Source: Octopus sinensis
Lineage: Eukaryota
DNA: 64,000 bases
NCBI RefSeq assembly: GCF_006345805.1
Contig: NC_043003.1
Location: 13,020,001 to 13,084,000 of the forward strand
Direction of reading: 5' to 3'
Part shown: one piece after another, positions 4,269-64,000 of the stretch
Numbering within the stretch: the stretch's first letter is position 1
Layout: each line of letters starts with the position of its first letter
Notes under the pieces: generated by a model
Told to the model about the DNA's origin: nothing
Database searches by the model: none
What the model saw: the letters and a program-made list of their open reading frames with translations, nothing else
Program-made: the position numbers and the translations under genes

Positions 4269-4412
4269 TTATCAACAGTCAACATGTATGTGACTTTGAG
4301 AAAGATCTCTGCAACTGGAACAGCCATAAATCCATCGACATAACATGGAAAAGAAAAGAAGGAAAATCAAATAAACACGAAGCAGAGACCTTGGCCGACC
4401 ACACCACAGGAT
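4269..4412 (+). CDS. MAM1 exon a
   Basis: [16 protein letters not shown]...LADHTTG; ccAG / GTATGT; phase 1-1. Confidence 0.9.
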
Positions 4413-7400
4413 GTATGTTCTTTTCCCATTTCGTTCTGAGCTTTCACTGAAAACTTTAAGTGCTGTGCCACTGATTAAAATGTCATGAACTGAAATCTTA
4501 GCTGTGTTCCACCTTACTGTGATAAATGATAATATCACTTACTAGCAGTATCGCCCGGCGTTGCTCGGGTTTGTTTCGACCCTTTAGAATTGGAATTTTT
4601 GAAAAGTAAAAACTTTGCATTATGAAGCTTGTTATTCTCTTTAAGTGAACATTTTTCTGGTTGAAATACACCGAAAAATGGCAACACAGCAGTAAAAAAA
4701 ATCGTAAAAAATAAGGATTTTCATAGAAAAAAAGCACCTTTTTGATGTAAATAATTTTTGGTGTTAACATGGTCCGATTTTAATTTTTTCTTCTACGGAA
4801 GGAAGAGCAAGCCTTTTTCTATCATACTCTCAGTTTTGGTCAATTTGCGCCGCAGGGTCTCGGAGGAGATAGCGTTAGTTGAAGGCTACCAAACCTGCCA
4901 TACACAGACAACTTCAGCCTTATATATATAGGGATTACAGTAAGGTGGTGAGCTGGCAGAGTTGTTAGCATGCTTGGTAGCATTTCATCTGTCTTTGTGT
5001 TCTGAGTTCAAATTCCACTGAGGTTAACTTTGTCTTTCATCCTTTCGAGGTCAATAGAAGGGCAACATATTTCAAGATCCTTTTTGGGTGTAAGCCAAAA
5101 TCTCCCAGTTTAAATGTCCACTTTTCCATGCTAGCATGCATCAGATGAATTCTGTTGAGGCAGATTTTCTACAGCCAGATGCCCTTCCTGTTGCCAGTCC
5201 TCTCCTGTTTCCAAGCAAGGTAATATTTTCCCCCATGGTCAGACATATTTTCTATGGAAGGCTGAAAATTAACAATATTCTTTTCTACTTTGGGCACAAG
5301 GCCCGAAATTTTGGGGGAGGGGACTAGTCGATTAGATCGACCCCAGTACACAACTGGTACTGAATTTATCGACCCTGAAAGGATGAAAGGCAGAATTTGA
5401 ACTCAGAACGTAAAGACAGAGGGAAAACTGCTAAGCATTTCACCCAGTATGCTAACATTTCTTATTTCTTTACTGCCCACAAGGGGCTAAATATTGAGGG
5501 GACAAACAAGGACAAAGGGATTAAGTCAATTACATTGACCCCAGTGTGTAACTGGTACTTAATTTACTGACCCCGAAAGGATGAGTGGCAAAGTCGACCT
5601 CAGCGGAATTTGAACTCAGAATGTAAAGACAGATGAAAAACTGCTAAGCATTTTGCCAGGTGTGCTAACATTTCTGCCAGCTCACCACCTTGGAAATTAA
5701 CAATATTGCTACTATGATGGTGATGCTTGCTTACAACCGTCACTTTCAGTTTCCTTCTACTAAACCAATGCCTAAGTTTTCAGTTGGTTCAGCGCTGTAG
5801 TAGAAGACTCTTACCCAATGTGTTGCACAGTAAGACTGAACCCATGAAACAAACTTCATAACAAAAACTCCATGCCTGCATCTCTTTAATATTCTAGAAG
5901 ACAGTTTTGGTCCAGTATTATTGAAAGATAATCTTATTCTTTATTTTCCAGTTCAGTAAGTCATGTTTAATGTAATTATAAGGTATTACAAAACCAGTTC
6001 GTTATTTGGGATAAAATATACATTCAGTTACATTTACTCATTGTTTGCTTTATATGTATTTAGTCACATTATTAATGAGAACTGGTTCCTATTTTAACTT
6101 GCTGCTGCTCATATCTTTCTTGCCAAACCCATATTCCCTGTGTGGAGGCACATGGCCTAGTGGTTAGAGCAGCGGACTCACGGTCGAGGGATCGCAAGTT
6201 CGAATCTCAGACCTGGCGATGTGTGTGTTTCTGAGCAAAACACCTAAGTTCCACGTGGCTCCAGCAGAAGGTAATGGCGAACTTCTGCTTACTCTTTTGC
6301 CACAAATTTCTCTCACTCTTTCCTCCTGCATCTTGCAGCTCACCTGCGACAGACCGGCGTCCCGTCCAGGTGGGGAACCTATATGCCAAGGAAACCGGGA
6401 AACTGGCCCTAATGAGCCAGGTATGGCTCAAAAAGAAACAAACAATAACATATTCACTGTGTTAATATAAGATCTTGGCATGCAGTTTCCACTTCTCTTG
6501 ACAATATTTCTTTCTTGAGAAAAAAAAAGTTTAAAAGTTTTGTTGTACTTCCATTAGATTTCATTCTAAAATTTTACTTTGTGTTTATTTCAGCTGGCTC
6601 TTACTTACATCTTGAGTACCAAAATCTGACTGAGAAAAATGTTGCCCAGATATTTACACCAGCATTTCTGCAGATGGACAAAAGCTATTGTTTGTCTTTC
6701 TATTATTACATGTCTGGCAAGTTTGACAAAGTCTTGTATATCTATAGATATAGCAATAACACTCAGCTACAAGATGAAGAAGTTATTGCACTTGAAGGTT
6801 CTCAAGATGAAAACTGGAGACTTTTTCAGACATCATTTAAAACTGAAAGAGAAAATCGGGTAAGTAGCGCTTTCCTTCAATGAACGGGGACATCGAGTTA
6901 GATTTTATTGAAGACATGTATGATTGATAGGGTAAACTTAAAATGCTACAATTCTAGTGCATTCTGTTTGTTACTGTAATGTAAAATGTTTTATTACACA
7001 CATGTGAGTGAGAACACTTTGAGATATTTTTGGTATCTAACATATGTCAGATACTGCGAGTGCTGCTTCTGATTGGTCAATCCATGGTGATGACCCGAGG
7101 TCACGGTGACAGCGCTGCTTCTGATTGGTCAATCCATGGTGATGACCCGAGGTCACGGTGACAGCGCTGCTTCTGATTGGTCAATCCATGGTGATGACCC
7201 GACATCACGGTGACGGCACTACTTTTGTCATTCATAAGTTACAACTAAACGTGAAGAATTTAGTTATTGGGTTAATAAAATATGGTCGTTTATTCGTGTG
7301 TAATAAATAAAATACCAAACTCATTCCCTATGGATACCGTATTTATTACAACTCGTGGCTTGTAAACGTATCTAACTCGCTTTCGCACGTTAGATACGTT

Positions 7401-9323
7401 TACAAGTCACTCGTTGTAATAAATACGGTATCCATAGGGAACTCATTTGGTATTCTCTATTTATTACAAATACAATGAAATGCATGGCTCGAGAAGGAAC
7501 AAACAACAACAACATTGTAATTGCCATAGTTTCAACATACATTTTCCAGTTACCAGTTCCATTCATAAGGTATTGGTCAGGCTGAGGCTAAAGAAGAAAA
7601 CACTTGTCCATGGTGACATGTAGCGGGAATCAGCCCAGACCATCATGATTCCAAAATAAGCTTCATAATCACACAACTGTGCCAGAACCCTCGTGCATGA
7701 GAGTAAAATAGAAGGAAACAGCTGTAGAGACATCAATTTGATTAAGCAGGTTATAAATGTAACAGAAAGTGTTTTAGCATAAACTAGCACTATGACCCGG
7801 TGATGCCGGGTCTAGTGCTAGTGCTTGTTGTTCTTTGCCTGGTCGCAGTAAACATTTCTCACTAAATCAAGAGCTAAGTTTCTTATCGCATTTCAGCCTG
7901 GGCCAGTTTTGTTGTTTATGAGCTAGTTGGAGCTTTTTATGAGAGTAATTAATATTCATTGGACTTTTCACACCTGGAATGACATAATCATGGAAAATTA
8001 GCAGGACTGTGTACATGCCATTAGTCGGGCAAAAAAGGAGGCAGAAGAAAGTAAAGAACAAGAAATTGGCTGCAAAATAACTTATGGGCATAAGGGGTCG
8101 GTTTATCGATTATTTTTAATGGCTTTCTGGGGTGACTGGGGAAATGAAAAAGTCTTCACGACCACCCTCAGACAGTTTTGAAAGCTCATAGAAAATGCGA
8201 GCCTTTTATGTGCAAAACTGTGGATTTGTATAAAGGACACACAGACACACAGACATTTTGCCGTTCATAGATATAGAGATGATTAGAAGACATGCAGTTT
8301 GGGTTTGTTCCCAGACAGGGTACATCTAATGCCTTCTTCCCAGTGAGACAACTGCAGGAGATGTATTGAGCTAAGAGTAATAGACATGATAACTAGCATT
8401 TGTTGACCCAGAGGAAGCTTTTCAGAAGATAGAATATTCTGTAGCCTGATTGTTACTGAGAAAACTAAGTGTAAATGAATGTATTGTGAGAGCCGTACAA
8501 ACCATGTACAGAAATACTGTTAACAAGATGAGAGTTGGCAATGAGTTTAATGAGCAGGGAGGTGTGCGTCAAGGTTTGGTTCTCAGCCCTCCCCTCTTCT
8601 TAACAAAAGTTAATATCATTAATCCAGTTAATGCCCTTGTTATTTGGCATCTTGAAAATTTATTCAACTTTCTATTTCAGCTGATGTTTGAAGCTCATCT
8701 GGAAGGGCCCACAGCTGATATTTCTATCGATGATGTACAACTTAAAGAAGGCTACTGTCCAGAGTCAAATGAGATTACAAGTAAGACACATTAAGATATC
8801 CATTTTAGTAAGGAAATGTGACTCTCTCGTTTTTGTTCTACCTTGTATATAACTAGGAAGTTTCACAAAAATGCAACAACTATTCCAGTTACAATTATTT
8901 AGTTGAGTAATCAGACATGTAGTAACTGTTACTGAAGATTAACCCTGGATCTTTACCTTTTGACCGACAGATTTTAAAAATAATTTTTTGTAACTAAACA
9001 CTTTCAAACTTCGGACACTGGTAGAATGTGTCATATAAAACATGTTTTACTCTTAGCATTTTTGAGAAAAACTTATATTTACAAAGCTATTTCACCTTAA
9101 AGTTATCGTATTTCGATAATTTCAACCAATCAATGACGTGTATTCAGCTGAATAAAATTACTACCGTTGTTTGTTAACAACAACTTCCTGCGGTGTATTT
9201 TTCGTTTGTCACTGTTATTTATGATAACCCTAACACTAAAACCCTAACCCTAACATCCAAACCCTAACCCTAATCCTAAAACCTTAAATCTAAAACCAGT
9301 ACAAATGCATGAACAATGACTGA

Positions 9324-10001: not shown

Positions 10002-13000
10002 ATACATACATACACACACACACATTATATGTATGTATGTATGAATATATATAAAAGTAGATAGTGTGTGTGCTTGTGTATATGTATACATAATATACAT
10101 ATAAATATATACATATGAAAAAATTTTTCTTACTAAATTAAATACCTGTATGTTTGTTTTTTTCTTTAGATTATGAGTCACTGGGGAATAATACAGCTCC
10201 ACCAACTCAGTTACCTTTCTCTTGTGACTTTCAAGATAATATATGTGGTTTTAAGATGATGTCAGGCATTTTGAAATGGAGACAAGGTCATGGCACAAGG
10301 TCTTACTTCAACAATGGGCCCGTGGACGATCATACATTTCGAACTCGATCAGGTAAAGGTTTTCAATGAATACATTAACGAATTCATCATCATCATCATC
10401 ATTTAATGTCCATTTTTCCATACTTGTAATGAGTCAGACAGAATTTGTTGAGACTGATTTTTCTACAGCTGGATACCTTTCCTGCTGCCAAAATAGCATT
10501 TTCCCATAGCTAGACATGTTTTTATTGTGTCTTGGTGATTGGCGTGTCTGGCTTTACAATCTTAAAATCACGAGTTCAACTCCTGGATAAAGCTGTGCAT
10601 CGTGTTCTTGAACAGGGCATTTCACGTGGCTCCAATCTGCTCTGTTGAAAAATGAGTACCGACTGACTGCTGGTGTATGTTGCCTTCTCTCTTTCTCTTC
10701 CCAATTGTCAGAATGTGACAACTGGAGTGAGTATAAGCTAACAGGTTATACTTACCTGTAGTCTTATGGACACACACACACGCACACATTATCATCATCA
10801 TCACCACCATCATCATTATCCTCATCAGCATTGTTTAACGTATGCCTTCCTTGATAGCATGAGTGGGGCAGTTTGACAGGAGCCAGGCAGGCAGGAACCT
10901 GCACCAGACTTCTGTGACTGCGTTGGTAAGATTTTCACAGCTCGATGCCCTTCCTGGCAACATTAAATGATGGCAGCTTTAAATTCCCATCACTGACTCT
11001 TCAAGAATCATATTTCAAAAGATAAACTGATGATGATGATGTTGACGACGACGACGACGACGTAAAAAATGTAGTTAGTTAAAGTTGTTTTTATTTTTTG
11101 TTTTTTTTTTCGTTTTTTGTTTTTCAGGCATTTACTTATATGCATCAGCCCCTTGGAAAAGTAAGAAAAGAGCGGCTCACTTAGTGTCTCCAGAATTCTC
11201 AGGCAAAGATCAAATTTGCGTTCAGTTTTGGTATAACATGTATGGAGAAAATATCAATAAACTCGAAGTTATTATACGGAATCAAACAGTTTGGTATGCT
11301 GCCGGTGACCAAGGATATGGTTGGAAAGTGGCCTATGTTTCCGTATTGCCAGGAGAAGATTTTAATGTAAGTAATCAGTGGAACTATGGCTTATTTTCAT
11401 AGGGTCTCTAGGAGTTGCGTGAGAACTGCAAAGCTGTGTGGGAGTGAGAGATGGAGTCTGAGGGGGAGAGAGATGGTAATTTTGAGAAGGACCGAGAGAG
11501 CAATGGTGAGAGAGATGTGTGGAATGAAGCTGTCTGATAAAAGGAGGATTGAACTCTCGATGAGGATGCTGGTGTTGGAGGAATCGGTGGAATGGCAGAC
11601 AAGGGCGAATGGAGTGTGGTGGTATGGGCATGTGTTGAGGTGGGACGAGGAGCATGTTCTGAAGAGGGTGCTTGATTGCAAGGTAAATGGACCAAGAATG
11701 CAAGGTAGACTGAGGAAAACGTAGAGGGGACAGGTGGAGGAAGAGATTGGGAGGCTTGGCTTGAGAAGGGAGGATGCCCAAAATAGGGCAAGATGATGAG
11801 ACGGTATGAATGCAGTTGCTATGGCATTGAAGTAGATCCAGCCACCCCTGTTATCAGGGACAAAATCGGATTTATTAGGCTGGCAACTAAGTTCCTACTG
11901 TTTTTTAAAATTAAAATTTTTTAAATAGTTTAATAAAAAAAACAACTAATTAATCAATAATGTATTCACCCTTGTTGTTTACAACTTCTCCCCAACATTC
12001 AACAAGATTTTCAATACCTCATTGGTAGAAATCACCCGATTTCAACTCAAAAAACTGGTCTAACCAAGCTCTCAATTCTACATCAGTATTGAACGAAATT
12101 CCACACATAGCATTTGAAAGAGATCAAAAGAGGTGGAAATCCATTGGTGCCAAATCAGGAGAGTACAGCAGGTGTGGCAGCACTTCCCAGCCATGTGTTT
12201 GAATTGTTTCCTTGGTCATATTGGCTATATGAGGGAGGGCATTGTCGTGCAGCAGAAGAACTCCATGCTGCCAATTAGGTCTTTTCTCTTGAATAGCCGT
12301 ATTGAGTCATTCCATCTGTTGAACATAGAGTTTCGCATTGACCATTTGGTTCCATGCAAGCAATTCGTAATGGATAATCCTTTCCCAGTCCAACCATATG
12401 CTATTTTCTTTAGTCAATACATGGTGATTGCTTATAAGTTTTAAGCTTATAAAAATATTACTATTATGTTTCATTTTGTAGGGATAACCCACTTTTATAA
12501 ATAGATAACTTTTATGTATGGATAACCCACTTTTTCTATCGAGGGCTTATATACCCCAGTATTAGACTATTTTCACATGGTGATTGCTTATAAGCTTTAA
12601 GCTTATTAAAATATTATCATTATGTTTCATTTCACATTGCTCTAGTCCACTCAGCTGGCAAAAATGAGTAATCCTGCAACAGACCAATGTCCTGTCCAGA
12701 TAGGGAATATATAAACACCATGTAAATCAGAAAACTGACCCTCTGAGTCTATATGGCTCTGGAAGGAGCTAAGAAGTGAAGCTTATCTCTTTCTTTCATA
12801 CAATTTTTATTTTTATTTCTGATTCTGTGTTGTTATTTTTACCCCCTTTTCCTCCACCATGTGTTAGTTTATTATTTTTTGTTTAGTAATTAAGACTAAA
12901 GCAAGAGGCAATTCAGTTAGCAGTAACTTTTATACCCAATACATTTTCAGATTACCTTCAATGCTTGGAGCAGTCTTAGAAAGACTGGTTATATGGCTAT

Positions 13001-21700: not shown

Positions 21701-23582
21701 ACATTCGGTAATATCGCAATTGATGACATTCTTCTCATTCATGGCACCTGTAATGGTAAGTCTAAATGATCTTGTCTCTTCTAATTGCACACAAACGTTC
21801 ATTGTTGATCAAGTAACAAAACCTTTAACAATAATCCTGACAAAAGCATGGCACTAACACTTTAGTTTTTAGGGAGAAGACAAGAAAGATAATGCTATCA
21901 GTTATTTGCTTTGATCGTTGGACTGTGGCCATACTGGAGCACTGGCTTCTATGGTTTTGTAGAATGACTTGATCTCGGTACTTGTTTTTGAAGCCTGGGA
22001 TTTATTTTGTCGGTCTCTTTTGCCAAACAGCTAAGTTATGTGGATGCAGCCACTACCTCCTCCAGGCACTTGATGTAGGCCTCCATGCTGAGTCTGAGGC
22101 CATGTGGGAAGATGAATGGAGGCATAACATCGCCATAACTTGTGCTCACTCCAAACACCATGATGTTGACTGGATGTTTGATTTTTATCACTCTTGGTAC
22201 ATGTTTTGGGGACACAGCAAGCCAATGTTTGTCCTGTGTGTTCACCAACTGATCCTGGCAGAAATTTTTCTTGTCTGAGAAAAACTAAAGCATGCTTGAG
22301 TTTGTTCAAAAGCTTCATAGTGTGGTCTTTCCTCTTGTCCTTGATGGCTTGGGATCAAAGCTATCCCTTTCTCATCTTGTATAAGGAATACCGAATATCT
22401 TCATGCACTACTTGCATGATAAGAAACTCACGCACTCACCTGCCCCTAGCAATGAACCTGATTGACTTGGAGGGATTGTTGTGAATCATGGCCTGGATCT
22501 CACCAAAAAATTCAGGAGTTCTTCTCTTATCAGAGTGAGTTTTCCGAGCTGCCAGTTATTCATAATCACCATTAGCCTCATCTGACTCTTTCCAAATCCT
22601 CTGCACTATCCTCAGATTGATATCCAAACACTCTGAAATGTTTATATTGGAGCTTCTGGCTCAAATGCCAAGCAGTACAGCATGTTGTTTCCAAATTTCT
22701 TATTTCTTTATTGCCCACAGGGGACAAAGCATAGATAGGACAAACAAAGACAGACAAAGGGATTAAGTATATTACATTGACCCCATTGCATAACTGGTAC
22801 TTAATTTATTGACCCCAAAAGGATGAAAGGCAAAGTCAACCTCGGTGGAATTTGAACTCAGAATGTAATGGCAGACAAAATAGCGCAAAGCATTTCGCCA
22901 GGCATGCTAATGTTTCTGCCAGCTTGCCACCTTTTCCAAATTTCTGGCTGAGTGAATTGCATCACAGTGCTGCTTTTCTCACAGACGGTGCCCAACTGAC
23001 CCTACTATACTGTGTAGCTGGCAAATTCAAAAGCAATATGCATGTGCCAACAGTCTGATTTGGCATAGTTTCTATGGCTTGATGCCCTTCCTAATGCCAA
23101 CCACTCTGAGAGTGTGATGGGTGCTTTTACATGCCACTAACATGGGTGCCAGTTGCATGACGCCAGTATCTTCCAAGACTGATTTCACTTGGCTTGATGA
23201 GTCTTCTCAAGCATGGCATATTGTCAACGGTCTCAATCATTTGTCTTTGCATTTGGAAATTTTGATTTGCAACTCACCGTCAATGATTTTATAAACCTGA
23301 CAACGTTTTGTAACAGTGGTTTTTTTTTTTATTAAATGTCTATTTAATTAATTCCTTTAAGGTAATCATTATCCCTCTTTTACTTGCTTCATTCATTTTG
23401 ACTGCGGCCATGCTGGAGCACCGTCTTTAGTCGAGCAAATCGACCCCAGGACTTATTCTTTGTAAGCCTAGTACTTATTCTATCGGTCTGTTTTGCCGAA
23501 CCGCTAAGCTACGGGGACATAAATACACCAGCATCGGTTGTCAAGCAATGTTGGGGGGACAAACACAGACACACAAACATAT

Positions 23583-53700: not shown

Positions 53701-56700
53701 GAGTGTAGTGGGTGCTTTTTACGTGCCACCGGCACAGGTGCCAGGGGAGTCTGGCATCGGCCACGATCGGTTGGTGCTTTTAACGTGTCACTGGCACGGA
53801 AACCAGTCAAGGCGGCGCTGGCATCGGCCACGTTTGGATGGTGCTTTTTATGTGCCATCGGCACAGAAGCCAGTCGAGGTGGCGCTGGCATCAGCCACAT
53901 TCGGATGGTGCTTTTTATGTGCCACCGGTACAGGTATCACAACTACTATTTCCATTGATATTTGTTTCAATGTTCATGTACTTGACTCAATAGGTCTCCT
54001 CAAGCACAGAGGGATGTTCTGGTATCCAAGGTACTTTTAATGGGCAGGGGCTATGTGGGACTGGTGCAGGAAGCAGCCCGGGTCTTTGCAGTCACAGCAT
54101 ATCTCCAGAGATCTCGGTCCTTTGCCATTGCCTCTGTGAGGCCCAACGCTCTGAGGTCATGCTTGGCTGTCTCACCCATGTCTTTCTGGGTCTTCCTCTC
54201 CCCCTGAAACCTTCAACTGTTTGGGAGCAGCACTTCTTCACACATCTCTCCTCATCCATCCACAGTACATGACCATACCATCGTAAGTGTCACTCTTGCA
54301 CACCACATCTGATGCTTCTTATGTCCAGCATTTCTCTCAGGGTGCTTACCCTGTCGTGTGCGCACACTGACATTACACATCCAGCAGATCATGCTAGCTT
54401 CATTCCTTTCAAGTCTACGCATGTCCTCTGCAGTCACAGCCCATGTTTCACTACTGTGAAGCATGGCAGTTCGCACACATGCATCATACAATCTACCTTT
54501 CACTCTAAGCGAGAGACCCTTTGTCGCCAGTAGGGGTAGGAGCTTTCTAAACTTTGCCCAGGCTATTTGTATTCTAGTGGTGACACTCTCTGAGCATCCA
54601 CCTCCACTACTAACTTGGTCACCCAGGTAGCGGAAACTATCAACTACTTCTAGTTTCTCCCCCTGGAGTGTGATGGAATCTGTTTTCTGAGTATCTGTGG
54701 TGTCTATTGTCCCTGTGCATCTGCCGCACATGAAAGCTATCTTATCAGTTAATTTCCCTTTGATGTTGCTGCACCTCTTATGCGTCCATAGCTTACACTG
54801 GGTACATCTTATGGAGTTTTTACCTACACCTTTCCTACAGATCGAGCAGGGCCACCTGCCCGAGGGTGTGTGTGCTGAGTTCGCCTTTCTGCTCACTATA
54901 ACTTTGGTCTTTGCTACATTTACTCTAAGGCCCTTTGATTCTAAACCTTGCTTCCACACCTGAAATTTCTTTTCTAGTTCCGGTAGTGATTCTACTATGA
55001 GAGCCAGGTCATCAGCATAGAGGAGCTCCCAGGGGCAACCTGTTTTGAATTCCTCTGTTATTGCCTGGAGGACTATGATGAATAAAAGGGGACTGAGGGC
55101 TGAGCCTTGGTGTACACCTACTTCTACCCGGAATTCTTCACTATATTCGTTGCCAATTCTAACCTTGCTGACAGCTTCTCTGTATAGGGCCTGTACAGCC
55201 CTTATTAGCCATTCGTCAATCTCCAGTTTCCGCATCGACCACCAGATAAGGGATCGGGGGACCCTGTCAAAGGCTTTCTCCAAGTCCACAAAAGCTATGT
55301 AGAGGGGTTTATCTTTAGCTAGGTATTTCTCCTGCAGTTGTCGGAAAGTCCTGGCCTCCAGCCAAAATTAGAAAAGAATTATTGGCATAATGGCTCTTTC
55401 AAAAAATCTGTTTCAACATAAAAATTCATATCAAGAGTCATGTGAACCAAATACAAAATTGAAATGTCAGTTGTTATTTTACATAATTACTAAATACTTA
55501 ATGTTTTTTTTTCCTAAAGTTATTTCCAAAGGTCACTATCTTATGGCGAAATCAAACAGTGGTCAAGCTGGCAGTATTTCTAAACTAGTAAGCACAGATT
55601 TTAACCCAACAGTCAACTGTCTCCATTTATGGTACAATATATATGGGAAGACACCCGCCACAATGACAGTGTACAAGAAGGCATCAAATACAAGTATTTT
55701 GTGGCAGCTTACAGATGAGCAAGAAGGAAACTGGAAGGAAGCACAAGTTCCTATATCAAACACTTCAGAAGTATTTTCAGTAAGTTCTCACTTTGTATAT
55801 CTACCTGTTATTATTTATAGATGCAATAAGGTGGAGAGCTGTCAGAAGTATTAGCATGCCAGGTGAAATGCTCAGCTGTATTTTGTCTGCCGCTACGTTC
55901 TGAGTTCAAATTCCACTGAGGTCGACTTTGCCTTTCATCCTTTTGGGGTCGATAAATTAAGTACCAGTTAAGCACTGGGGTCGATATAATCGACTTAATC
56001 CGTTTGTCTGTCCTTGTTTGTCCCCTCTGTGTTTAGCCCCTTGTGGATAGTAAAGAAATAGGTATTTTGTCTGTTTTTACGTTCTGAGTTCAAATTCTGC
56101 CGAGGTCGACTTTGCCTTTCATTCTTTCAGGGTCGATAAATTAAGTACCAGTTATGCACTGGGATTGATATAATCGACTTAATCCGTTTGTCTGTCCTTG
56201 TTTGTCCCCTCTGTGTTTAGCCCCTTGTGGATAGTAAAGAAATAGGTATTTTGTCTGTCTTTACGTTCTAAGTTCAAATTCTGCCGAGGTCGACTTTGCC
56301 TTTCATCCTTTCGGGGTCGATAAATTAAGTATCAGTTGCATACTGGGATCAATATAATCGAGTGGTCCCCTCCCCCAAAAGTTTCGAGCCTTGTGCCTAG
56401 AGTAGAAAAGATTATTTATAGATGAAATGCCAAGCAAAATGCTTAGCAGCATTTCATGTCTTCACATTTTGAGTTCAAATTCTTCTGAGGTAGATTTACC
56501 TGTCCAACTTTTAGGGTCGATAAAATAAGTACCAGTTGAGTTCTGGGGTCAATAGGATTGACTTAGCCATTCCTGTGAAGTTGCTCGCCTTGTGCCAAAA
56601 TTTGAAACCAATATTTGTGGATGCAAGTATTGCTATGTGATTAAGAAGTTTATTTGGCAACCACATGATTTCACCTTCAGTCCCACTGCATGGTACCTTG

Positions 56701-57237: not shown

Positions 57238-60147
57238 TCATCTTGATGCTTCATGACAGCCGTAAGCAAGTGTCACAGTCATAAAAGCAGTGTTCATCAT
57301 TTCCAGCTTTTTGCAAAAGCATGTCTGACCACGAGGGGGAAATATTCCCTTGATTGGAAACAGATGAGAGTTGGCAACAGGAAGAGCACCCGGCTGTAGA
57401 AAGTCTCCTTCATACAAGCATGAAAAAAGCTGATGTTAAAACATTGATGAGAAGGAAGATGGATATGCATGTGTTTGTGTGGTATGTATATGCGTGTGCA
57501 TGTGTGTGTGTGTGTGTATACATGTGCATGCATGTATGTGTGTGTGTTGCTTAATATTTACAGTTTTATATTTAAAAGATGAGGAATTGTGTACATTATT
57601 TACAGGCATATAGCGTAGTGGTTAAGAGCACGGGCTACTAACCCCAAGATCCCGAGTTCAATTCCAGGCAGCCGACCTGAATAATAATAATAATATTAAT
57701 AATAATAACAACAGCGAAAAATACCTTAGGAATGAGAACCCAGGTTCGAAATTTCCTCAAGACACCTGATGAAGGCTGGAGGGTATATCAGCTGAAACGT
57801 GTTAACAACAAACAAGATGAGGAGAAATAATCTATCAAATGTAAATAATGTAAATAATGTACTTATTATTTATTTATATATTTTAATTCATTCATTCAAT
57901 AAAAGTCCCTTTACTTTATCTTCATAGATTGTAATTGAAGTTAAGTCTGGCAGCAAAAGCTATGTGGCAATTGATGACACACATTTTAACAAAATACATG
58001 ATTGCGCACGTAAGTACCTTTGTTTTTTCATCTATTTTTAAGGCAGCAAGCTGGCAGAAATGTTTAATGGCATTTCATCCATCTTTGAGTTCTGAGTTCA
58101 AATTCTGCAAAGATCAACATTACTTTTCATCCTTCATGGGGGTGGGTAATGAAATAAGTGCCAGCTGTGCATGGCAGTCGGTGTAATTGACTTATCCCCT
58201 TTGCCATAATTCCTGGCCTTGTGCCAAAATTTCAAGCTGATATTTCATCTGTTCTTCTCCTGGTTTCTACCCCATAATTCTTGGCCTTGTGCCAAAATTC
58301 AAAACCAAAATTTCATTGTGAAATATTGGTTTCAAATCTCAAGTGAAATATTGATTTTGAATTTTGACACAAGGCCAGGAATTATGGAGTAGGAATTCAG
58401 AGAAGAATAGATGAAATATCGGTTTTGAATTTTGGCACAAGGCCAGGAATTATTCTTCCCCTGGTTCCTATACCATAATTCTTGGCCTTGTGCCAAAATT
58501 CAAAACCAATATTTCATCTATTCTTCTCTAAATCATCTATTCTTCTCCTACGACCATGAGTCCACTGCTCTTACCACTGGACCATTGCGCCTCTACATAT
58601 ATATAGACACACACACATGCACACACCTGTAGGTTAAACCTTTTGCATTTAAACCAGCCATATCAGGCCTAAATATTCTATGTTTTATGTTCAAACTGGC
58701 TGAATTTAGCCTCTCACACCTATCATACCATGCCATTCTAAAAATATACTACTGTCATCGTTTAACGTCTGCCTTCCATCCTGGCATGGGTACATCATTG
58801 AAATCTAGAAGCAGGATTAATGCAAATCAATTTGAATAAATAAGCATTATGTTTGACAGAATAATCTGAATGCTAAAGGGTCAAAATACTAGATATTGTG
58901 GTCCCAGTGCTGGGGATAGCAGGGCTTTATCACCCCTCTAGCAATATAAAGAAGGGTGCATTTTGCATTAAAAAGCCAATATGAGAGTCTCTCTCATGGT
59001 ATCTACCACAGTATAGTTTGTTCTAACAGAACATCCACATGAGCATAAATGTTACCTCTCAGTATTTATACTGCTTCTGTCACTTTTATATGTTTACTAA
59101 TTATTTTGAATCTTCTCAGGTAAACCAAGCAATGCTATTGCTGCTCATACTACGGCCAAAAGATCATATACCACTAAGCCAGCAACAGTTCCTCAGACAG
59201 GTGAGATAATCTATTTTATAATTATATGAATTTATAATTACCATATTTTAATGTATATAAGGAACCCTCGTGTATAAGGAACCCCTAATTTGGGGGCTTA
59301 AAATTTAGAAAGAAGGTTTTGTAAGGGAGTATATTACTATCCATGTATAAGAAACTCCCATATTTTTTTATCTAATTTTTGACAAAAGTGGGTTCCTTAT
59401 AGACATTAAAATACAGTATGTGAATTATTTATTTATAATTATATGAATTATATAAATTACAATTTATAATTATTTGAATTATAATTCCTCATTGAGGAAA
59501 TGGAAAGGGACCAAGAATCATGGTGATTTGCTGTACCTGAGAACATGCGTGAAATTAAGTAAAATCCCTGTGATCCGTATATACAGGTTTGTCATTCCAG
59601 GTGCCAGTGCCACATAAAATGCACTCATGCCAGTACCGCATAAATGGACTCATGCAGATGGCACGTAAAAAGCACCCAGCATGCTCTGTAAAGGGATTAG
59701 CATTAAAAAGGGCACCCAGCCATAGAAGCCGTGCCATGACAGATCATCGGAATTAGGATAGCTCCTTGACCAGCCAGCTCCATGTCGAACCATCCATCCC
59801 ATGCCAGCATGGAAAACAGATGTTAAACGACGACGATGATGATGATGATGAGGAGGAGGAGGAGGATATAAATATTTGTTGAACTGACAGTCTAAAAAGC
59901 AGGGGGGATCCCAACTAAGAGGTAGGAGCATGCACCCTGCAAGATGGCATTTCAGTGGGATATGATGAAGATGGGAAATTAAATAGACTATTTCCTCAAC
60001 TCACTACCATCATCTCATTTCCCACTGGCCTGTAATATTCACTCCTTTAAGCTTTCTGTCAATCAATATCATTTGAATTTCTAGGCCCCTTCTTTTACAT
60101 ATTTGTAGTCCCTTTATAATGTGGTGGCCTAAAGCTTTGTTTGGGAC

Positions 60148-60185: not shown

Positions 60186-63100
60186 TATTTACTGTCTGTT
60201 GTCCATGCTGGCATGGGTTAGACAGTTTGACTGGAACTGGTAAGATGGAGAGCTGCACCAGGTTCTAATCTGATTTGCATGGTTTCTACGGCTGGATGCC
60301 CTTCCTAATGCCAACCACTCCAAGAGCATAATGGGTGCTTTTTACATGCCACCGGCCCAAGTGCCAGTTACACAACATCAGCATTGGCCACAACTGCTAT
60401 CACTTGGCTTGATGAGTCTTCTCAAGCACGGCAAAGATCTCGGTCATTTATCATTGCTTCTGATTACAAGTATCTTGGGTCATACATATCATCATCTGAA
60501 AAAGATTTTCTAACTCGAAAGAGTATGGCCTGGTCAGCCTGTAATGATATGCATAAGATCTGGTCATCAAATCTAAGTAGAGATTTCAAACTTAAAATCT
60601 TCAAAGCCACAGTCGAACCAATTCTACTATATGGCTCAGAAACCTGGACGTTATCAAAGAAGCTTGAGAGGCGGTTGGATGGAGCTTACACTCACCTCCT
60701 TATGAGAGCTCAAAATCTCTCGTGGAAGCGTCATCCAACCAAAGTACAAATATATGGGAAACTACCACCTGTATCATCTCTTGTGAAAAGTAGAAGAGTC
60801 CAGTTTGTTGGACATTGTTGTAGAGCTGAATACGAGGTAATTTCTACACTTCTCCTCTGGAAGCCATCTGCTCGCGATACCAGAGGGCGCACACTTTCCT
60901 ACCCTGATGTAATCTCCAGGGATACAGGCATCCAGCAACATGACCGCCGTAATGCTATGATGAACCATGAAGTCTGGTGTAGCATAGTAAAATCCATTGT
61001 CTCGACCACGATCGAACAACGATGATGATGATGAGTCTCTTTTAAACAAAAAAAGAAAACAGATTGTTGGAATCACTGGCTCATCATCGAAATGTACCTT
61101 CATTGTGTCTTTCTTACAAGTATTTCCACCGTCATTACTCTGACAGGTGAATCGTTTCCCTGTTAAGCTTCCTGTTAGTCTTAAGTCCTTTTTATTCTAA
61201 AAGCTCACCAGTATCATTTTGTTTTCTTCTAGTCCAGTGGTTCCCAAACTTTTTTAGGCTGCCTCCCCTTGGACACCCAACCCACATTCCTAGTACCCCC
61301 ACCCCAACTAACCATCACAAACATAGACCCCTTTCTAAAGCATATTCAAAGCAACTGTATTTAACAAATAAAACTTAACCTCATGAACCCATTTGTTGTT
61401 TTACATAAATTGCTACCCATTATCAACCCACTTTTTATATGAATCGCCATCCCCATTATTGCCCTACTATTCTTCAGTGCCCCTTTGGAACTTTCCACTG
61501 CCCCTATTAGGGGCAATATTGCCCACTTTGGAAACCACTGCTCTAATCTATGATATTCAGTCTCTCAAGCTTTCTGCCAATCAACAGTATTTGTAGAATT
61601 TGAAGGCAGCGATCTGGCAGAAACGTTAGCACCCCAGGTGAAATGCTTAGCAGTATCTCATCTGTCTTTATGTTCTGAGTTCAAATTTCGCCAAAGTCAA
61701 CTTTGCCTTTCATTCTTTCGGGGTCGATAAAGTAAGTACAAGTTGTGTACTGGGGTCGATCTAATCGACTGGATCCCTCCCCAAAAATTTTGAGCCTTGT
61801 GCCTAGAGTAGAAAGGAATATTTTAAGGTGGCAAGCTGGCAGAAACATTAGCACCCCAGGCGAAATTCTTAGCAGTAATTCGTCTGTCTTTACATTCTGA
61901 GTTCAAATTCCACCAAGGTCGACTTTGCCTTTCATCCTTTCAAAGTCAATAAATTAAGTACCAGTTGTGTATTGGGGTCGATCTAATCAACTGGTCCCCT
62001 TACCAAAAATTTCAGGCTTTGTGCCTAGAGTAGAAAAGAATATCTTAAGGCAGTGAGCTGGCAGAAACATTAGCATGCTTAGCGGTATTTCGTCTGTCTT
62101 TACGTTCTGAGTTCAAATTCTGCCAAGGTCAACTTTGCCTTTCATTCTTTCGGGGTCAGAGTAGAAAGAGTATCTGTAGAATTTTAAATTTGTAGCTCCC
62201 ACTTCTTTCCGTTCTTTGTAGTCCCTTTTTCTATAGTTACAAAATCACACAAAGCACAGTATTCTGTTCAGCTCTCTGATCCAAAGATATCTTCCTATCT
62301 TCTTTCAACTAATGTTGGAGGCTTGGAAAGTTGTCCTCAGAGCTGCTCTTCTTCCACTGACCATGGTATCAAAAATAATAAGTTAAAACAAGTTTTTTAA
62401 AAATGCTTTTTTTTAAATTGGAGCTTCTTGTTTTGTTTCTTATTGTTATAACCTTTGCCTTAGCAAAGGTGGAGGTATTGTTTTCAGTTGTGTTTGTTTG
62501 TTTGTCCATGGACAAGATATCTCAATAACCGCAGAATGGATTCAGATGAAACTTTCAGGAATGTTTGGCCTTGTGACTGGCATAAACTGATTAGATTTTG
62601 GGACAAGGATACTGGATCATTTTTCCAATTTTTTACTTAATTTTTGAGAACAATCAGGTTCCTTTCTAGTATTTTTGTTTGTGAGAGCAGTCGAGTTTAT
62701 TTCAGATATTCTCATTTTAAAAATCATCTCTGGCTAATCATTGTGTTGCCTTGGCGAAGGTTTGTGCTCTCTGAATGCTCTTGTTATTGTGGCTGTTGTT
62801 GTTTTTTATTATTCCTGTTTTGTTTTTTATTGTTATTGTTTTGTTTTGTTTTGTTTTAGACTCTTTTAAATCATGTACATTTTCAACTGGGTTTTGTGGT
62901 TGGCAACAGCTTCCTGGTAGTAAAGTAAAGTGGCAAATGAAGCGAGGTAAAACAGCTACACAGGATACAGGACCGAAAAGGGATCACACCACTGGCAGTA
63001 AGTATTTAAATAAATAAGGATTATTTCACTAAACAGTAAGCATATGGTGCAGGCATGGTTGTGTGGTAAGAAGTTTGCTTCCCAACCACATGGTTCTGGG

Positions 63101-63538: not shown

Positions 63539-64000
63539 AGGATGGTTTGACAGGAAACTGGTAAACTCCAGGGCTGTGTCAAGCTCCAGTATCAACGTTG
63601 GTAAGCTAAAACATTAATATCTTCTTTGAAACTGAAATAAATTTTTGCTTTGTTAAAAGCTGTTATAATTTGAACCTTCAAGTTTGTACCAGCCTGCACA
63701 TATACACACACAGATGATAGTAATATTTTTGGAACTTTTTACAGCTGGAAACTATATCTATATTGAAACATCCAACCCGGTTGTATCAGGAGACAGCACT
63801 CATCTTATCAGTCCCAAATTTCAAGTACCAGGATCACAGGAATGGTGTCTAAGTTTTTGGTATCACATGTATGGATATGGAATTGGTACGTTGTCTGTGG
63901 TATATAGAGGCAAATCTGATGTAGTTGCTTGGCAGAAGAGGAAATCTCAAGGAAACAAATGGATAAATGGTCAAGTAAACATCAGAGGACCACAAGAACT
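4269..64000 (+). CDS. Multi-exon gene for a large extracellular tandem-MAM-domain protein (>=10 MAM domains, MALRD1/MAMDC-like but no LDLa seen); incomplete at both ends
   Basis: 32 AG/GT-bounded exons splice into one open frame. Each unit shows MAM motifs C-x-F-E..C-x-W, DHT, G-x-Y, L-x-S-P, C-L-x-F-W/Y-Y-x-M-x-G, W, F-E-G, I-A-I-D-D..C. No start, signal peptide or stop in window. Confidence 0.93.
4541..4932 (+). mobile_element. Helentron/HINE-like non-autonomous element
   Basis: 5' ACTAGcagtatcgcccggcgttgctcggg, 3' ttatatatatag; same 5' end on - strand at about 29560-29942; relative at 7783-8281. Confidence 0.6.
6594..6859 (+). CDS. MAM1 exon b
   Basis: GSYLHLE...[11 protein letters not shown]...ENWRLF..ENR; tttcAG / GTAAGT; phase 1-0. 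Confidence 0.92.
7062..7235. repeat. Three tandem about 58-bp repeats
   Basis: gctgcttctgattggtcaatccatggtgatgacccgaggtcacggtgaca x3. Confidence 0.85.
8285..8605 (+). mobile_element. Degenerate RTE reverse transcriptase fragment
   Basis: [34 protein letters not shown] with stops. Confidence 0.75.
8681..8780 (+). CDS. MAM1 exon c
   Basis: [33 protein letters not shown]; phase 0-1. Confidence 0.92.
9446..9916. repeat. About 470-bp fold-back palindrome (Penelope-like)
   Basis: About 230-bp arms, 8-nt loop 9679-9686. Confidence 0.9.
10170..10352 (+). CDS. MAM2 exon a (with short linker)
   Basis: [27 protein letters not shown]...[12 protein letters not shown]; phase 1-1. Confidence 0.92.
11128..11366 (+). 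CDS. MAM2 exon b
   Basis: GIYLYAS...[26 protein letters not shown]; phase 1-0. Confidence 0.93.
11400..11872 (+). mobile_element. RTE LINE C-terminal fragment
   Basis: [34 protein letters not shown] with stops, RTE-type 3' end. Confidence 0.8.
11873..12435 (-). mobile_element. mariner transposase 3' fragment with terminal repeat
   Basis: LLHDNA and [22 protein letters not shown]; TIR-like tattaggctggcaactaagtt at 11873. Confidence 0.85.
12951..13041 (+). CDS. MAM2 exon c
   Basis: [30 protein letters not shown]; phase 0-1. Confidence 0.9.
13304..13674 (+). mobile_element. RTE (BovB-like) LINE 3' end with inverted 5' piece
   Basis: Frame from 13372: [41 protein letters not shown] stop 13620; (TAG)n tail; TSD-like tatagt(t/c)ctaag at 13292-13303 and 13675-13686. 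Confidence 0.82.
15335..15469 (+). CDS. MAM3 exon a
   Basis: [30 protein letters not shown]; weak aAG acceptor, GTAATA donor; phase 1-1. Confidence 0.88.
16905..17164 (+). CDS. MAM3 exon b
   Basis: [42 protein letters not shown]; phase 1-0. Confidence 0.93.
18088..18172 (+). CDS. MAM3 exon c
   Basis: [28 protein letters not shown]; phase 0-1. Confidence 0.92.
18300..18420 (+). mobile_element. Penelope-like GIY-YIG endonuclease C-terminal remnant
   Basis: [19 protein letters not shown] resembles the E-A-L-x-I..P-x-x-N end of PLE GIY-YIG domains. Confidence 0.45.
19127..19216 (+). CDS. Inter-triplet linker exon 1 (T/P/K-rich)
   Basis: [29 protein letters not shown]; ttacAG / GTAAGT; 90 nt, phase 1-1. 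Confidence 0.78.
19559..19689. mobile_element. Tc1/mariner-type MITE
   Basis: TIRs cagggtgtccc..atgtatacac / gtgtatacat..gggacaccctg, TA flanks. Confidence 0.82.
20335..20466 (+). CDS. MAM4 exon a
   Basis: [27 protein letters not shown]; phase 1-1. Confidence 0.9.
20704..20963 (+). CDS. MAM4 exon b
   Basis: [31 protein letters not shown]; phase 1-0. Confidence 0.93.
21140..21605. repeat. (GAT/GAC/AAC)n compound microsatellite
   Basis: Degenerate trinucleotide run inside an intron. Confidence 0.9.
21671..21755 (+). CDS. MAM4 exon c
   Basis: [28 protein letters not shown]; phase 0-1. Confidence 0.93.
22050..22690 (-). mobile_element. Degenerate Tc1/mariner-superfamily transposase (maT/DD37D-like)
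   Basis: [37 protein letters not shown] plus broken N-terminal region. Confidence 0.7.
23897..24082 (+). CDS. MAM5 exon a (with short linker)
   Basis: [41 protein letters not shown]; phase 1-1. Confidence 0.92.
24715..25040. repeat. (GAT/GGT/GAG)n compound microsatellite
   Basis: Degenerate trinucleotide run inside an intron. Confidence 0.9.
26393..26544 (+). CDS. MAM5 exon b1
   Basis: [35 protein letters not shown]; phase 1-0. Confidence 0.93.
27574..27791. mobile_element. mariner-type MITE
   Basis: TIRs tgaggaggtgctgaaaa..cctgg / ccaggaacttttcagcacctcctca, TA flanks; truncated second copy 36724-36900. Confidence 0.85.
28112..28222 (+). CDS. MAM5 exon b2
   Basis: [37 protein letters not shown]; phase 0-0. 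Confidence 0.88.
28480..28795 (+). mobile_element. tRNA-derived SINE family A (copies: 6143-6432 +, 17281-17584 +, 37821-38131 -, 46185-46348 -)
   Basis: A/B-box head ggcgcaatggcccagtgg..tttcgattccc, shared body ending gaaaccgggaaactgg; 13-bp TSD aaggtttctacag. Confidence 0.88.
29969..30059 (+). CDS. MAM5 exon c
   Basis: [30 protein letters not shown]; phase 0-1. Confidence 0.93.
31300..31597. repeat. Inverted repeat, about 125-bp arms
   Basis: aaagattgtttgccaacataacatggcagtcc mirrored by ggactgccatgttatgttggcaaacaatcttt. Confidence 0.9.
31861..32004 (+). CDS. MAM6 exon a
   Basis: [31 protein letters not shown]; phase 1-1. Confidence 0.92.
32493..32865 (+). mobile_element. tRNA-derived SINE family B (copies: 14703-15112 +, 23376-23795 -, 25083-25480 -, 29172-29445 +, 52125-52558 -, partials at 42083, 45490, 63050)
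   Basis: Head gtggctgtgtggtaag..gggttcagtcccactg, CORE-like ccttgggcaagtg, internal (TA/TG)n, tail gactgaaacaagtaaaagagta. Confidence 0.88.
33035..33360 (+). mobile_element. Short 3'-UTR-only RTE copies (others: 700-940 -, 37200-37436 +, 51737-51960 -, 59560-59850 +, 60170-60450 -, 28365-28910 -)
   Basis: ggttggcgttaggaagggcatccagctgtagaaac..ggacgttaaacgatgatgat, matching the 3' UTR of the RT-bearing element at 53541-54250. Confidence 0.82.
33720..34410. repeat. (GAT)n microsatellite with higher-order units
   Basis: tattacccagtatcaagaagga recurs at about 33898, 34035, 34148, 34279. Confidence 0.88.
34680..35262. repeat. 34-bp minisatellite, about 17 copies
   Basis: aaaatttccacttatttcttatttttattttcct repeated head to tail. 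Confidence 0.92.
35665..35826 (+). CDS. MAM6 exon b
   Basis: [29 protein letters not shown]; phase 1-1. Confidence 0.92.
38833..38954. repeat. Perfect 54-bp-arm hairpin, 14-nt loop
   Basis: 38833-38886 is the exact reverse complement of 38901-38954. Confidence 0.92.
39208..39387 (+). CDS. MAM6 exon c
   Basis: [39 protein letters not shown]; phase 1-1. Confidence 0.93.
40020..41000 (-). mobile_element. Degenerate RTE-clade LINE endonuclease (APE) fragment
   Basis: [29 protein letters not shown] and [21 protein letters not shown] in broken frames. Confidence 0.85.
41793..41987 (+). CDS. Inter-triplet linker 2 + MAM7 exon a
   Basis: [46 protein letters not shown]; phase 1-1. Confidence 0.88.
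43315..43535. mobile_element. piggyBac-type MITE
   Basis: TTAA on both sides, TIRs cccttttgatacc / ggtaacgaaaggg; weaker relative at about 58634-58884. Confidence 0.8.
43711..43973 (+). CDS. MAM7 exon b
   Basis: [32 protein letters not shown]; phase 1-0. Confidence 0.92.
45065..45380 (-). mobile_element. tRNA-derived SINE family E (others about 10530-10720 +, 17634-17755 +)
   Basis: gtggttagggtatttggctcatgactgtaaggttgtgagttcaattcc head followed by gtgtccttgaacaagacacttt. Confidence 0.7.
46921..47002 (+). CDS. MAM7 exon c
   Basis: [27 protein letters not shown]; phase 0-1. Confidence 0.92.
48621..48776 (+). CDS. MAM8 exon a
   Basis: [35 protein letters not shown]; phase 1-1. Confidence 0.93.
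49315..49503 (+). CDS. MAM8 exon b
   Basis: [31 protein letters not shown]; phase 1-1. Confidence 0.93.
49876..50363. repeat. Long inverted repeat, about 225-bp arms
   Basis: tttgccacttaaatgtggctaacccttaagggtggatgc mirrored at the other end; about 40-nt spacer. Confidence 0.9.
51540..51692 (+). CDS. MAM8 exon c
   Basis: [38 protein letters not shown]; phase 1-1. Confidence 0.93.
52833..52964 (+). CDS. MAM9 exon a
   Basis: [27 protein letters not shown]; phase 1-1. Confidence 0.93.
53541..55343 (-). mobile_element. 5'-truncated RTE-clade LINE: reverse transcriptase, 3' UTR with ~62-bp repeats, (GAT)n tail
   Basis: ORF 54252-55289: [39 protein letters not shown]; frameshift near 54350; tail reads catcatcatc on + at 53541. 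Confidence 0.92.
55532..55779 (+). CDS. MAM9 exon b (in-frame alternative start possible at 55520)
   Basis: [39 protein letters not shown]; phase 1-0. Confidence 0.9.
55832..56600 (+). mobile_element. tRNA-derived SINE family C, tandem cluster (others: 5285-5690 -, 22705-22930 -, 30165-30370 -, 35913-36300 +, 51100-51310 -, 61605-62170 +, 63200-63430 +)
   Basis: Head gagctggcagaa..ttctgagttcaaattc; central ctttgcctttcatcctttcggggtcgataaattaagtaccag resembling the Deu/Nin SINE domain (from memory). Confidence 0.85.
57605..57865 (+). mobile_element. tRNA-headed element with (AAT)n spacer and hammerhead-like 3' part (copies 15565-15847 -, 39550-39830 -, head only 50612-50720 +)
   Basis: tagcgtagtggttaagag..gagttcaattcc head, (AAT)n, then ccttaggaatgagaacccaggttcgaaattt..gacacctgatgaaggctgg..gaaac. 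Confidence 0.8.
57928..58009 (+). CDS. MAM9 exon c
   Basis: [27 protein letters not shown]; phase 0-1. Confidence 0.9.
59120..59200 (+). CDS. Inter-triplet linker exon 3 (T/P/K/A-rich)
   Basis: [26 protein letters not shown]; ctcAG / GTGAGA; 81 nt, phase 1-1. Confidence 0.78.
59241..59416. mobile_element. pogo/Tc1-type MITE
   Basis: Imperfect TIRs ccatattttaatgtatataaggaacc / ggttccttatagacattaaaatacag, TA flanks. Confidence 0.75.
60455..61033 (+). mobile_element. 5'-truncated RTE-like LINE 3' end
   Basis: [29 protein letters not shown], followed by (GAT)n tail. Confidence 0.85.
61235..61540. mobile_element. hAT (Charlie-like) MITE
   Basis: TIRs cagtggttcccaaa / tttggaaaccactg; 8-bp flanks ttctagtc / ctctaatc. 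Confidence 0.78.
62448..62790 (+). mobile_element. Helentron/HINE-like element; its 3' part is also at 1-124
   Basis: gagcagtcgagttt..cagatattctcattttaaaaatcatctctggctaatcat..ctctgaatgctcttgttatt shared with window start. Confidence 0.55.
62860..62997 (+). CDS. MAM10 exon a
   Basis: [29 protein letters not shown]; phase 1-1. Confidence 0.92.
63745..64000 (+). CDS. MAM10 exon b (runs off window end)
   Basis: [40 protein letters not shown]. Confidence 0.93.

Follow-up and report, generated by a model that had tools for sequence, protein, structure and literature searches.

MAM domains are beta-sandwich modules for adhesion and oligomerisation, found in meprins, RPTP mu and neuropilins. Several large proteins carry them in numbers. 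In zonadhesin, a MAM array is followed by mucin-like sequence and by VWD, TIL and C8 domains, and in zonadhesin as well as in fish zonadhesin-like proteins the tandem MAM domains are separated by linkers of 30-40 aa. Vertebrate MALRD1 (Diet1) and MAMDC4 (endotubin, or apical endosomal glycoprotein) are large and extracellular, as are certain coral proteins with many MAM domains; MALRD1 and MAMDC4 alternate MAM with LDLa modules. Outside this domain family, the super-repeats of titin (Ig/FN3) and nebulin arrange distinct versions of one domain type in an order that is conserved along a very long protein. To our knowledge, no periodic partner structure has been reported for a MAM array. In coral proteins named "MAM and LDL-receptor", MAM domains stand together with LDLa, EGF, fibronectin and trefoil modules (PMC4890752), and Pro/Thr repeats lie between the modules of coral skeletal-matrix proteins (PMC4043741).

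The gene described here lies in a window of 64,000 nucleotides of Octopus sinensis DNA (the whole stretch that was analysed, from contig NC_043003.1) and encodes ten MAM domains, M1 to M10, in a repeated order of three classes, A, B and C. The best explanation overall, which we hold with considerable confidence, is that it is an orthologue of an ancient MAM-only family whose array of tri-MAM cassettes was multiplied before the octopus lineage. A protein search with the full model returned 236 proteins, and a query with M1-M3 alone returned four distant matches. The top matches were giant MAM-only proteins, namely, that of the oyster Crassostrea virginica (P0005, 2772 aa), which covers 100% of the query at 36% identity, and those of amphioxus, a crinoid, scallop, Biomphalaria and Lingula; no cephalopod orthologue was present among the 236 proteins. 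The family relatives are the oyster protein, with 16 MAM domains, Lingula anatina P0010, and proteins of Pecten, Haliotis, Biomphalaria and Lymnaea. The window gene has in common with the oyster family an exclusive use of MAM domains, the A-B-C order, a 5-residue connector between B and C, and a long linker between C and A with a start of the PSxA type. It departs from its homologues in its long linkers, which contain less Thr and more Lys/Arg, and in the unusual divergence of M1 and M7.

MALRD1, MAMDC4 and the coral proteins are weaker homologues (22-26% identity), and bird MALRD1 shows no A-B-C order, with spacings of 15-67 aa. No LDLa-like cysteine/acidic motif was found in a six-frame scan of the window and, since no LDLa module was found, the gene is, judged by its predicted domains, not of the MALRD1/MAMDC4 type. 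The database name "MAM and LDL-receptor" given to its homologues is a misnomer for it, as neither the model nor the window contains LDLa. Unlike the window gene, three fish zonadhesin-like proteins (P0030, P0044 and P0079) are A-type-only arrays devoid of 5-residue junctions, and VWD/TIL domains were not found within the window. The likeness to titin and nebulin is by analogy only, the domain family and the cellular location being unrelated. In the literature we found neither a tri-MAM super-repeat nor A/B/C classes of MAM domains described, and no experimental study of any member of the MAM-only family. The gene is thus an ordinary representative of a family that is widespread and uncharacterised, no new kind of biological system is revealed, and what seems to be undescribed is the conserved A-B-C grammar, together with the way in which the cassettes keep their positions. 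Proteomic work mentions proteins of the same name in octopus skin mucus (PMC10138644) and in coral skeletal matrix (PMC4043741, PMC4890752); a common name does not make them products of this gene, and the coral ones contain LDLa modules.

To build the gene model, MAM-coding pieces were located by phmmer and HMM scans of stop-free segments, using MAM exon seeds and small HMMs, and exons were linked by hand through GT-AG sites that keep the frame, with a simple splice scorer of our own. All stop-free segments of the window were scanned and MAM-coding pieces were found on the + strand only. The resulting model comprises 32 exons encoding 1689 aa without stop codons, and spans from 4269 to the window end. 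Pfam identified in it 10 MAM stretches (PF00629), with a total of 1120 bits for a cut-off of 26.4, and no other family. Four conserved Cys per domain of ~155 aa, together with DHT and (I/L)A(I/L)DD motifs, are present in all of M1-M9; M10 is truncated by the window end. A typical MAM domain is encoded by three exons, a, b and c. The a/b intron is in phase 1, immediately 5' of the G-x-Y that comes after DHT; the b/c intron is in phase 0, ahead of a hydrophobic-x-F-E strand; and the intron after exon c is in phase 1, a few residues past the last Cys. Exceptions to this plan are M5, which has an extra intron, and M6 and M8, in which a displaced intron replaces b/c. A tblastn comparison of oyster, Lingula and abalone proteins with the window matched 24 of the 32 exons, and neither strand had a match outside them; the basis for the eight short exons consists of HMM matches, splice logic and orthologous intron positions.

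The first cassette is encoded as follows; here and below, each exon was identified by scan, splicing, tblastn and a coincident oyster intron unless its evidence is given. Exon a of M1 (class A) begins with a phase-1 acceptor (4269..4412; scan and splicing, with the following intron common to oyster). Exon b (6594..6859) and exon c follow, the latter including the start of the A-to-B linker (8681..8780; scan, splicing, oyster intron). The remainder of this 25-aa linker is joined to exon a of M2 (class B), which contains the ICGF motif (10170..10352), and M2 continues with exon b (11128..11366) and with an exon c that ends 4 residues past the last Cys, at CTRP/DIC (12951..13041; scan, splicing, oyster intron). 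M3 (class C) is made of exon a (15335..15469), exon b (16905..17164) and exon c (18088..18172; scan, splicing, oyster intron). A separate linker exon in phase 1-1 lies between M3 and M4 (19127..19216; splicing, with a separate linker exon also in oyster at this place).

In the second cassette, M4 (class A) has exon a at 20335..20466, exon b at 20704..20963 and exon c at 21671..21755. An 18-aa A-to-B linker and exon a of M5 (class B, again with ICGF) share the exon 23897..24082. M5 exon b1 (26393..26544) is followed by the extra phase-0 intron, also found in oyster domain D5, then by exon b2 (28112..28222; HMM scan, splicing, oyster intron) and exon c, which ends at CSVK/GDC (29969..30059). M6 (class C) starts with exon a (31861..32004), and its exon b1 (35665..35826) is followed by the displaced phase-1 intron, also present in oyster D6, and by a combined exon b2+c (39208..39387). 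The 30-aa C-to-A linker that comes next lies in one exon with M7 (class A) exon a (41793..41987), as in oyster D7, and opens the third cassette. M7 exon b lies at 43711..43973 and exon c at 46921..47002 (scan, splicing, oyster intron). A 9-aa A-to-B linker precedes exon a of M8 (class B, with ICGF) in 48621..48776 (scan, splicing, tblastn), and M8 exon b1 (49315..49503) is followed by the displaced phase-1 intron, also in oyster D8, and by exon b2+c, with the junction CNKQ/GTC (51540..51692; scan, splicing, tblastn). M9 (class C) has exon a at 52833..52964, exon b at 55532..55779 and exon c at 57928..58009 (HMM scan, splicing, oyster intron). A second separate linker exon in phase 1-1 stands between M9 and M10 (59120..59200; splicing, with a separate linker exon in oyster there), and M10 (class A) is represented by exon a (62860..62997) and by an exon b that is cut by the window end (63745..64000; scan, splicing, tblastn).

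Two scans of positions 1-4268 for a signal-peptide exon yielded no credible candidate, but microsatellite-derived ORFs only. In the oyster gene, the signal peptide is divided from MAM1 by the first intron, which lies in phase 1 after aa 16 and matches the phase-1 acceptor at 4269; M1 would thus be the first domain of the protein, with one short upstream exon missing. Very probably, the window holds about exons 2 to 33 of an orthologue in the ancient metazoan family of MAM-only giant proteins. Both gene ends would lie outside the window, and secretion or anchoring is suggested by the homologues. That the window might contain several tandem genes was considered and rejected, as stops, terminal exons and signal peptides are absent between cassettes, and the collinearity of the model with a single oyster gene also contradicts it.

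The spacing of the domains follows a period of three. From M1 to M10, the linkers measured from last Cys to first Cys are 25, 5, 36, then 18, 5, 30, then 9, 5, 33 aa, and the chance that nine lengths sort perfectly by position modulo 3 is 6*(3!)^3/9! = 0.0036. The original prediction had described three junction types, short or medium between A and B, direct between B and C, and long between C and A, and the measured lengths bear it out. The three direct junctions that it had listed, CTRPDIC, CSVKGDC and CNKQGTC, are found exactly so in the spliced model, and the T/P/K-rich composition that it had attributed to the C-to-A linkers agrees with the measured 36-39% S/T/P and 6-7 K/R in each. These long linkers open with TTPSKA, IIPSKA and RKPSNA; two of them are the separate phase-1/phase-1 exons and the third is the one fused to M7 exon a. 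Cassettes start at model residues 7, 536, 1061 and 1564, so that the A-B-C unit measures ~500-530 aa. When species are compared, xxPGx is the consensus of the B-C connector, and the C-A linker opens with x-x-P-[S/A/G]-x-A; the long linkers of the homologues contain 43-71% S/T/P.

Inside the gene, the classes are also marked by motifs. The B domains M2, M5 and M8 have ICGF, with F where the MAM family has W, and this is a true derived character. They also have DHT(F/L/Y)x(T/S)xxG, and in A domains the gap between DHT and G-x-Y is 1-2 residues shorter. The class motifs that had been predicted are present; however, the C signature CxFE..CxW..DW is not specific to that class, as it corresponds to the general MAM consensus, with DW also in M4 and M7. 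Pairwise identity between window domains is 22-40%, M5 and M8 being the closest pair at 40%. When the nine full domains were grouped by summed Smith-Waterman score, the A/B/C partition ranked 1 of all 280 3x3 partitions; it ranked 2 on exon a alone and 29 on exons b+c, the signal being mainly in the N-terminal third. The expectation that a tree of the ten domains would give the clusters (1,4,7,10), (2,5,8) and (3,6,9) failed: the tree (NJ, a distance method, like all trees here) was star-like and did not recover the classes. M5+M8 reached 70% bootstrap, the sole pair at that level, M10 paired with M6, and support for the three predicted groups was 3-19%, below 10% for (2,5,8) and (3,6,9). This lack of resolution reflects saturation, not missing structure.

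Homologous proteins gave a clearer picture of the classes. We labelled 95 domains from eleven homologous proteins as A, B or C by linker context alone, and built from them three class HMMs that included no window sequence. These HMMs called M2, M5 and M8 as B, M3, M6 and M9 as C, and M4, M7 and M10 as A, that is, 9 of 10 domains as predicted; the scores of M1 tied, with 105.3 bits for A and 107.9 for B. The best match among the 16 oyster domains was of the expected class for all 10 window domains. Among the 105 domains taken together, 95 had a nearest neighbour in another protein that was of the same class, and an NJ tree of all 105 gave a clade purity (F1) of 0.96 for C, 0.84 for B and 0.82 for A, as compared with at most 0.61 for shuffled labels. 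The two domains that have diverged most, M1 and M7, grouped with B in this tree, and the class membership of M1 appears ambiguous by sequence. Thus, the claim that three sequence classes track the linker period is upheld by the cross-species HMMs and by the oyster best matches, with M1 tied by HMM. As far as such comparisons tell, A, B and C are shown to be old classes spread over phyla.

The linker rhythm itself is widespread. In oyster P0005 the linkers run 19 5 41, 8 4 30, 14 5 48, 21 5 35 and 13 5 36, and in Lingula 5 41, 10 5 34, 17 5 55 and 24 5 35. A matching rhythm was found in about ten database proteins, with oyster, scallop, abalone, Biomphalaria, Lymnaea, Pomacea, Lingula and a rotifer represented, and a coral protein shows a similar run of 6, 5, 32, 6. 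The A-B-C order occurs with other spacings in proteins of a sea star (a-5-B-5-C-17 repeated), lobster, spider and amphioxus, one amphioxus cassette having an additional B-like domain.

Beyond class, each domain has a positional counterpart. On sliding the window array along those of other species, the mean domain score peaked at register k=0 for oyster (286), scallop (296), abalone (303), a JGI protein (297) and Biomphalaria (239), and at k=-1 for the N-truncated Lingula protein (294). Secondary peaks, separated by troughs, were seen at multiples of 3, and the comparison of oyster with Lingula had the same register outcome. With the amphioxus and crinoid proteins the period was kept, and the register scan showed no positional orthology. 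For all 10 window domains, the positional oyster counterpart outscored every paralogue of their own gene (403 vs 306 for M5; 388 vs 242 for M6). We mapped exactly the 50 exons of the oyster gene (L001) and counted an intron as matching when it lay within 2 aa and had an equal phase. In a global alignment to the oyster protein, at 37.1% identity, oyster introns coincided with 29 of the 31 in the model. Among these are the features peculiar to single domains, namely, the extra intron in M5/D5 and the displaced ones in M6/D6 and M8/D8; the layout of linker exons, separate at 3/4 and 9/10 and fused at 6/7, is also common to both genes. This agreement in introns and register validates the hand-built gene model. 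Moreover, since orthologues outscore paralogues and domain-specific introns are common with oyster, the array would already have existed in the common ancestor. The comparison shows a cassette array that, on sequence evidence, was present nearly intron by intron in the common ancestor of octopus, bivalves, gastropods and brachiopods. By the same kind of evidence, the triplet array predates the mollusc-brachiopod split, and its age is to be counted in hundreds of millions of years.

These data bear on how the array arose. The original prediction was that the gene grew by tandem duplication of a tri-MAM cassette of roughly 520 aa. The multiplication of an A-B-C unit stands, and best explains why the classes follow the linker period; the timing has to be corrected, as the duplications took place long before the octopus lineage. 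A recent, lineage-specific duplication of the ~520-aa cassette, with copies that have since diverged, would account for period-3 linkers and class motifs within one gene, and for the closeness of M5 and M8 with their 40% identity and 70% bootstrap. We consider it very improbable, because paralogous domains are just 22-40% identical, no domain is as near to a paralogue as to its positional oyster counterpart, five lophotrochozoan proteins give a register peak at offset 0, and the domain-specific introns are common to the oyster gene. Nor could we attribute much to the way in which the model was made, or to a chance order of nine lengths. The model was built from genomic DNA, some splice sites score weakly (including the donor at 13041 and the acceptors at 15335 and 26393), and both separate linker exons are symmetric, so that skipping either one would keep the frame; wrong linker exons or splice sites might then have produced the pattern. 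Yet, the optional exons have no part in the three 5-residue junctions or in the 6/7 linker, the C-A linker lengths match those of the oyster orthologue (36/41, 30/30 and 33/48 for window/oyster), the 29 coincident introns come from an independently annotated gene, and the pattern recurs in the ten or so database proteins. With a perfect sorting being so rare by chance, an artefact has in our opinion a negligible probability.

A different possibility is that the periodicity does not come from common descent of cassettes, and that the classes converged under structural selection acting on position, as when a domain placed after a 5-residue connector is driven towards a C-like sequence; the array could then have grown domain by domain. 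The class signal in the window gene is indeed concentrated in the N-terminal third of the domains, adjoining the linkers, the additional B-like domain of the amphioxus cassette indicates that single-domain changes occur, and fish zonadhesin-like arrays are of A-type only. In contrast with what such convergence would predict, the classes were recovered over whole domains from 105 sequences of several phyla, the C-to-A linkers themselves have a common motif and exon arrangement, and the duplication of cassettes would be expected to give register peaks at multiples of 3, as observed. This makes convergence improbable, and we retain the ancient multiplication of an A-B-C cassette.

We examined the fold of the unit on the orthologous oyster cassette D4-D6, used as a proxy for the window gene, by running AlphaFold2 with an alignment of 21 cassettes. 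The A-B-C cassette gave a pLDDT of 86.6 and a pTM of 0.57, and the B-C pair alone a pLDDT of 89.0 and a pTM of 0.64; both pTM values fall between our own rough expectations for independent and for rigidly packed domains. Single domains were modelled with confidence, junction blocks were the least confident, and no fixed mutual orientation was predicted. The MAM trimer that the original prediction had put forward as a possible functional unit is, on these models, no more than a candidate. Foldseek against the PDB placed the oyster cassette model best on 8yt7, the scavenger receptor-C of Spodoptera frugiperda (rmsd 1.7 A, 37% identity), and the window M5-M6 sequence matched solved MAM chains with E-values of 1e-9 to 1e-26. 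The solved MAM structures, namely, 8yt7, neuropilin-1 (5l73), RPTP mu (2c9a), meprins, enteropeptidase and MDGA1, have the same fold. In this Foldseek search of the PDB, MAM domains appeared singly, each beside other domain types, and no tandem-MAM structure was found.

A picture of the protein can be proposed from these elements. Homologues have a signal peptide directly before MAM1, and in the Lymnaea protein the last domain gives way to a mucin-like stretch, after which come a transmembrane helix and a short tail. By analogy, the octopus protein would be secreted or anchored in the membrane as a type I protein. Its MAM beta-sandwiches may act as multivalent adhesion or ligand-binding modules, a function suggested by the domain type and the architecture of the homologues. 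The 5-residue connector would keep B and C close together, the A domain would be tethered to B by its linker of 9-25 aa, and the C-A linkers of 30-36 aa would set the cassettes apart. Rich in S/T/P, and here also in K/R, these long linkers could be extended and probably O-glycosylated spacers, giving the appearance of beads on a string. One would thus have a very long glycoprotein with many binding surfaces, made of B-C pairs, each with a tethered A.

The conserved positional identity of the cassettes suggests that they may not be interchangeable. A stronger version, which we advance tentatively and with somewhat more doubt than conviction, is that the A-B-C cassette is a structural and functional unit that predates bilaterians, and that its copies are non-interchangeable and have kept their place and private introns since before the mollusc-brachiopod split. 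If this were true, each cassette would have its own partner, or the reading of the array would keep to a fixed register, as with a molecular ruler, and the xxPGx connector of 5 residues would make B-C a rigid pair.

The analysis replaces annotations that read "MAM, MAM, MAM" by a grammar with three old classes, two conserved connector motifs and a positional orthology of cassettes over phyla. It offers a rule by which to annotate and name a large and widespread family of invertebrate surface or secreted proteins that is now mislabelled as LDL-receptor-containing, and natural construct boundaries for structural and binding work, either the A-B-C cassette or the B-C pair. It also provides a case in which to study the stability of long domain arrays through hundreds of millions of years, and illustrates that a tree of paralogous domains from one gene can miss a real super-repeat that is visible in cross-species comparison.

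As for its general composition, the DNA of the window is AT-rich, with a GC content of 33-43%, and contains many microsatellites and transposon fragments. In keeping with an octopod source, an intronic ORF for a reverse transcriptase is 75% identical to a predicted protein of Octopus vulgaris.

The ten MAM domains of the gene, M1 to M10, fall into three sequence classes in repeating order (A, B, C), and the A-type domains M1 (4269-8780) and M7 (41793-47002) were far more diverged than the remaining domains. In domain comparisons, these two gave the lowest scores against everything, and both were misplaced in the neighbour-joining tree of 105 MAM domains. This divergence could have arisen because, in cassettes 1 and 3, the A position is under relaxed constraint or has taken on another function.

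M1 also has a transposon remnant at the border of one of its exons. A reverse-transcriptase-like fragment (8450-8680, + strand) lies immediately 5' of exon c of this domain and shares its frame. Because the fragment adjoins the exon in frame, an open frame (8450-8791) runs from the transposon remnant into the exon. The predicted acceptor at 8681 leaves the fragment out of exon c.

Three zonadhesin-like proteins of cyprinid fish (P0030, P0044 and P0079) carry long MAM arrays with regular linkers of 32-51 aa, in which class assignment placed every domain in the A type and found no B or C domains. Such A-type-only arrays are a different mode of MAM domain expansion. In the Branchiostoma belcheri protein P0006, domains 4-7 form a four-domain cassette consisting of A, an extra B-like domain, B and C (linkers 9, 9 and 5). 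Single-domain duplications therefore occur within the array too.

The oyster homologue P0005, a MAM-only protein of Crassostrea virginica, ends at its C-terminus in a truncated 16th MAM domain. In the oyster locus coding for it (L001), in the stretch 29592-30550, the next called gene, whose product is listed at 10,233 residues, begins just 42 bp past the end of the P0005 gene. Given this short gap and the truncated last domain, the two neighbouring models may be pieces of one much larger oyster gene. As to cephalopods, the homologue search returned no orthologue of the MAM gene among its 236 matched proteins, from a database that does contain Octopus vulgaris proteins. It may be that the gene is absent or fragmented in current cephalopod annotations.

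The introns of the MAM gene hold two further open reading frames. The longer one, of 345 aa (54252-55289, - strand), is a retroelement insertion inside the intron between exons a and b of M9; it carries reverse-transcriptase and PHD-finger domains (Pfam). At 74-75% identity it matches one protein from ENA and a 'hypothetical predicted protein' of Octopus vulgaris, which makes it the strongest pointer to an octopod origin of the window. The other, of 213 aa (60384-61025, + strand), lies in the intron that separates linker exon 9/10 from exon a of M10. Its sole Pfam match was a weak, below-cut-off one to DUF6451, and it resembles the C-terminal portion of a protein encoded by a retroelement.

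Repeats are also present in and around these introns. SINE-like units form short tandem arrays of 2.5 copies at 55878-56361 (184-bp unit) and at 61603-62151 (222-bp unit), and a 62/63-bp unit occurs both 5' of the MAM gene (3704-3953) and in an M6 intron (33035-33189); fragments of these same elements were found again across many introns in the window. The intron between exons a and b of M6 contains, in addition, a long GAT-rich microsatellite (33766-34408) and a minisatellite of 17 copies of a 34-bp unit with 97% identity (34679-35264).
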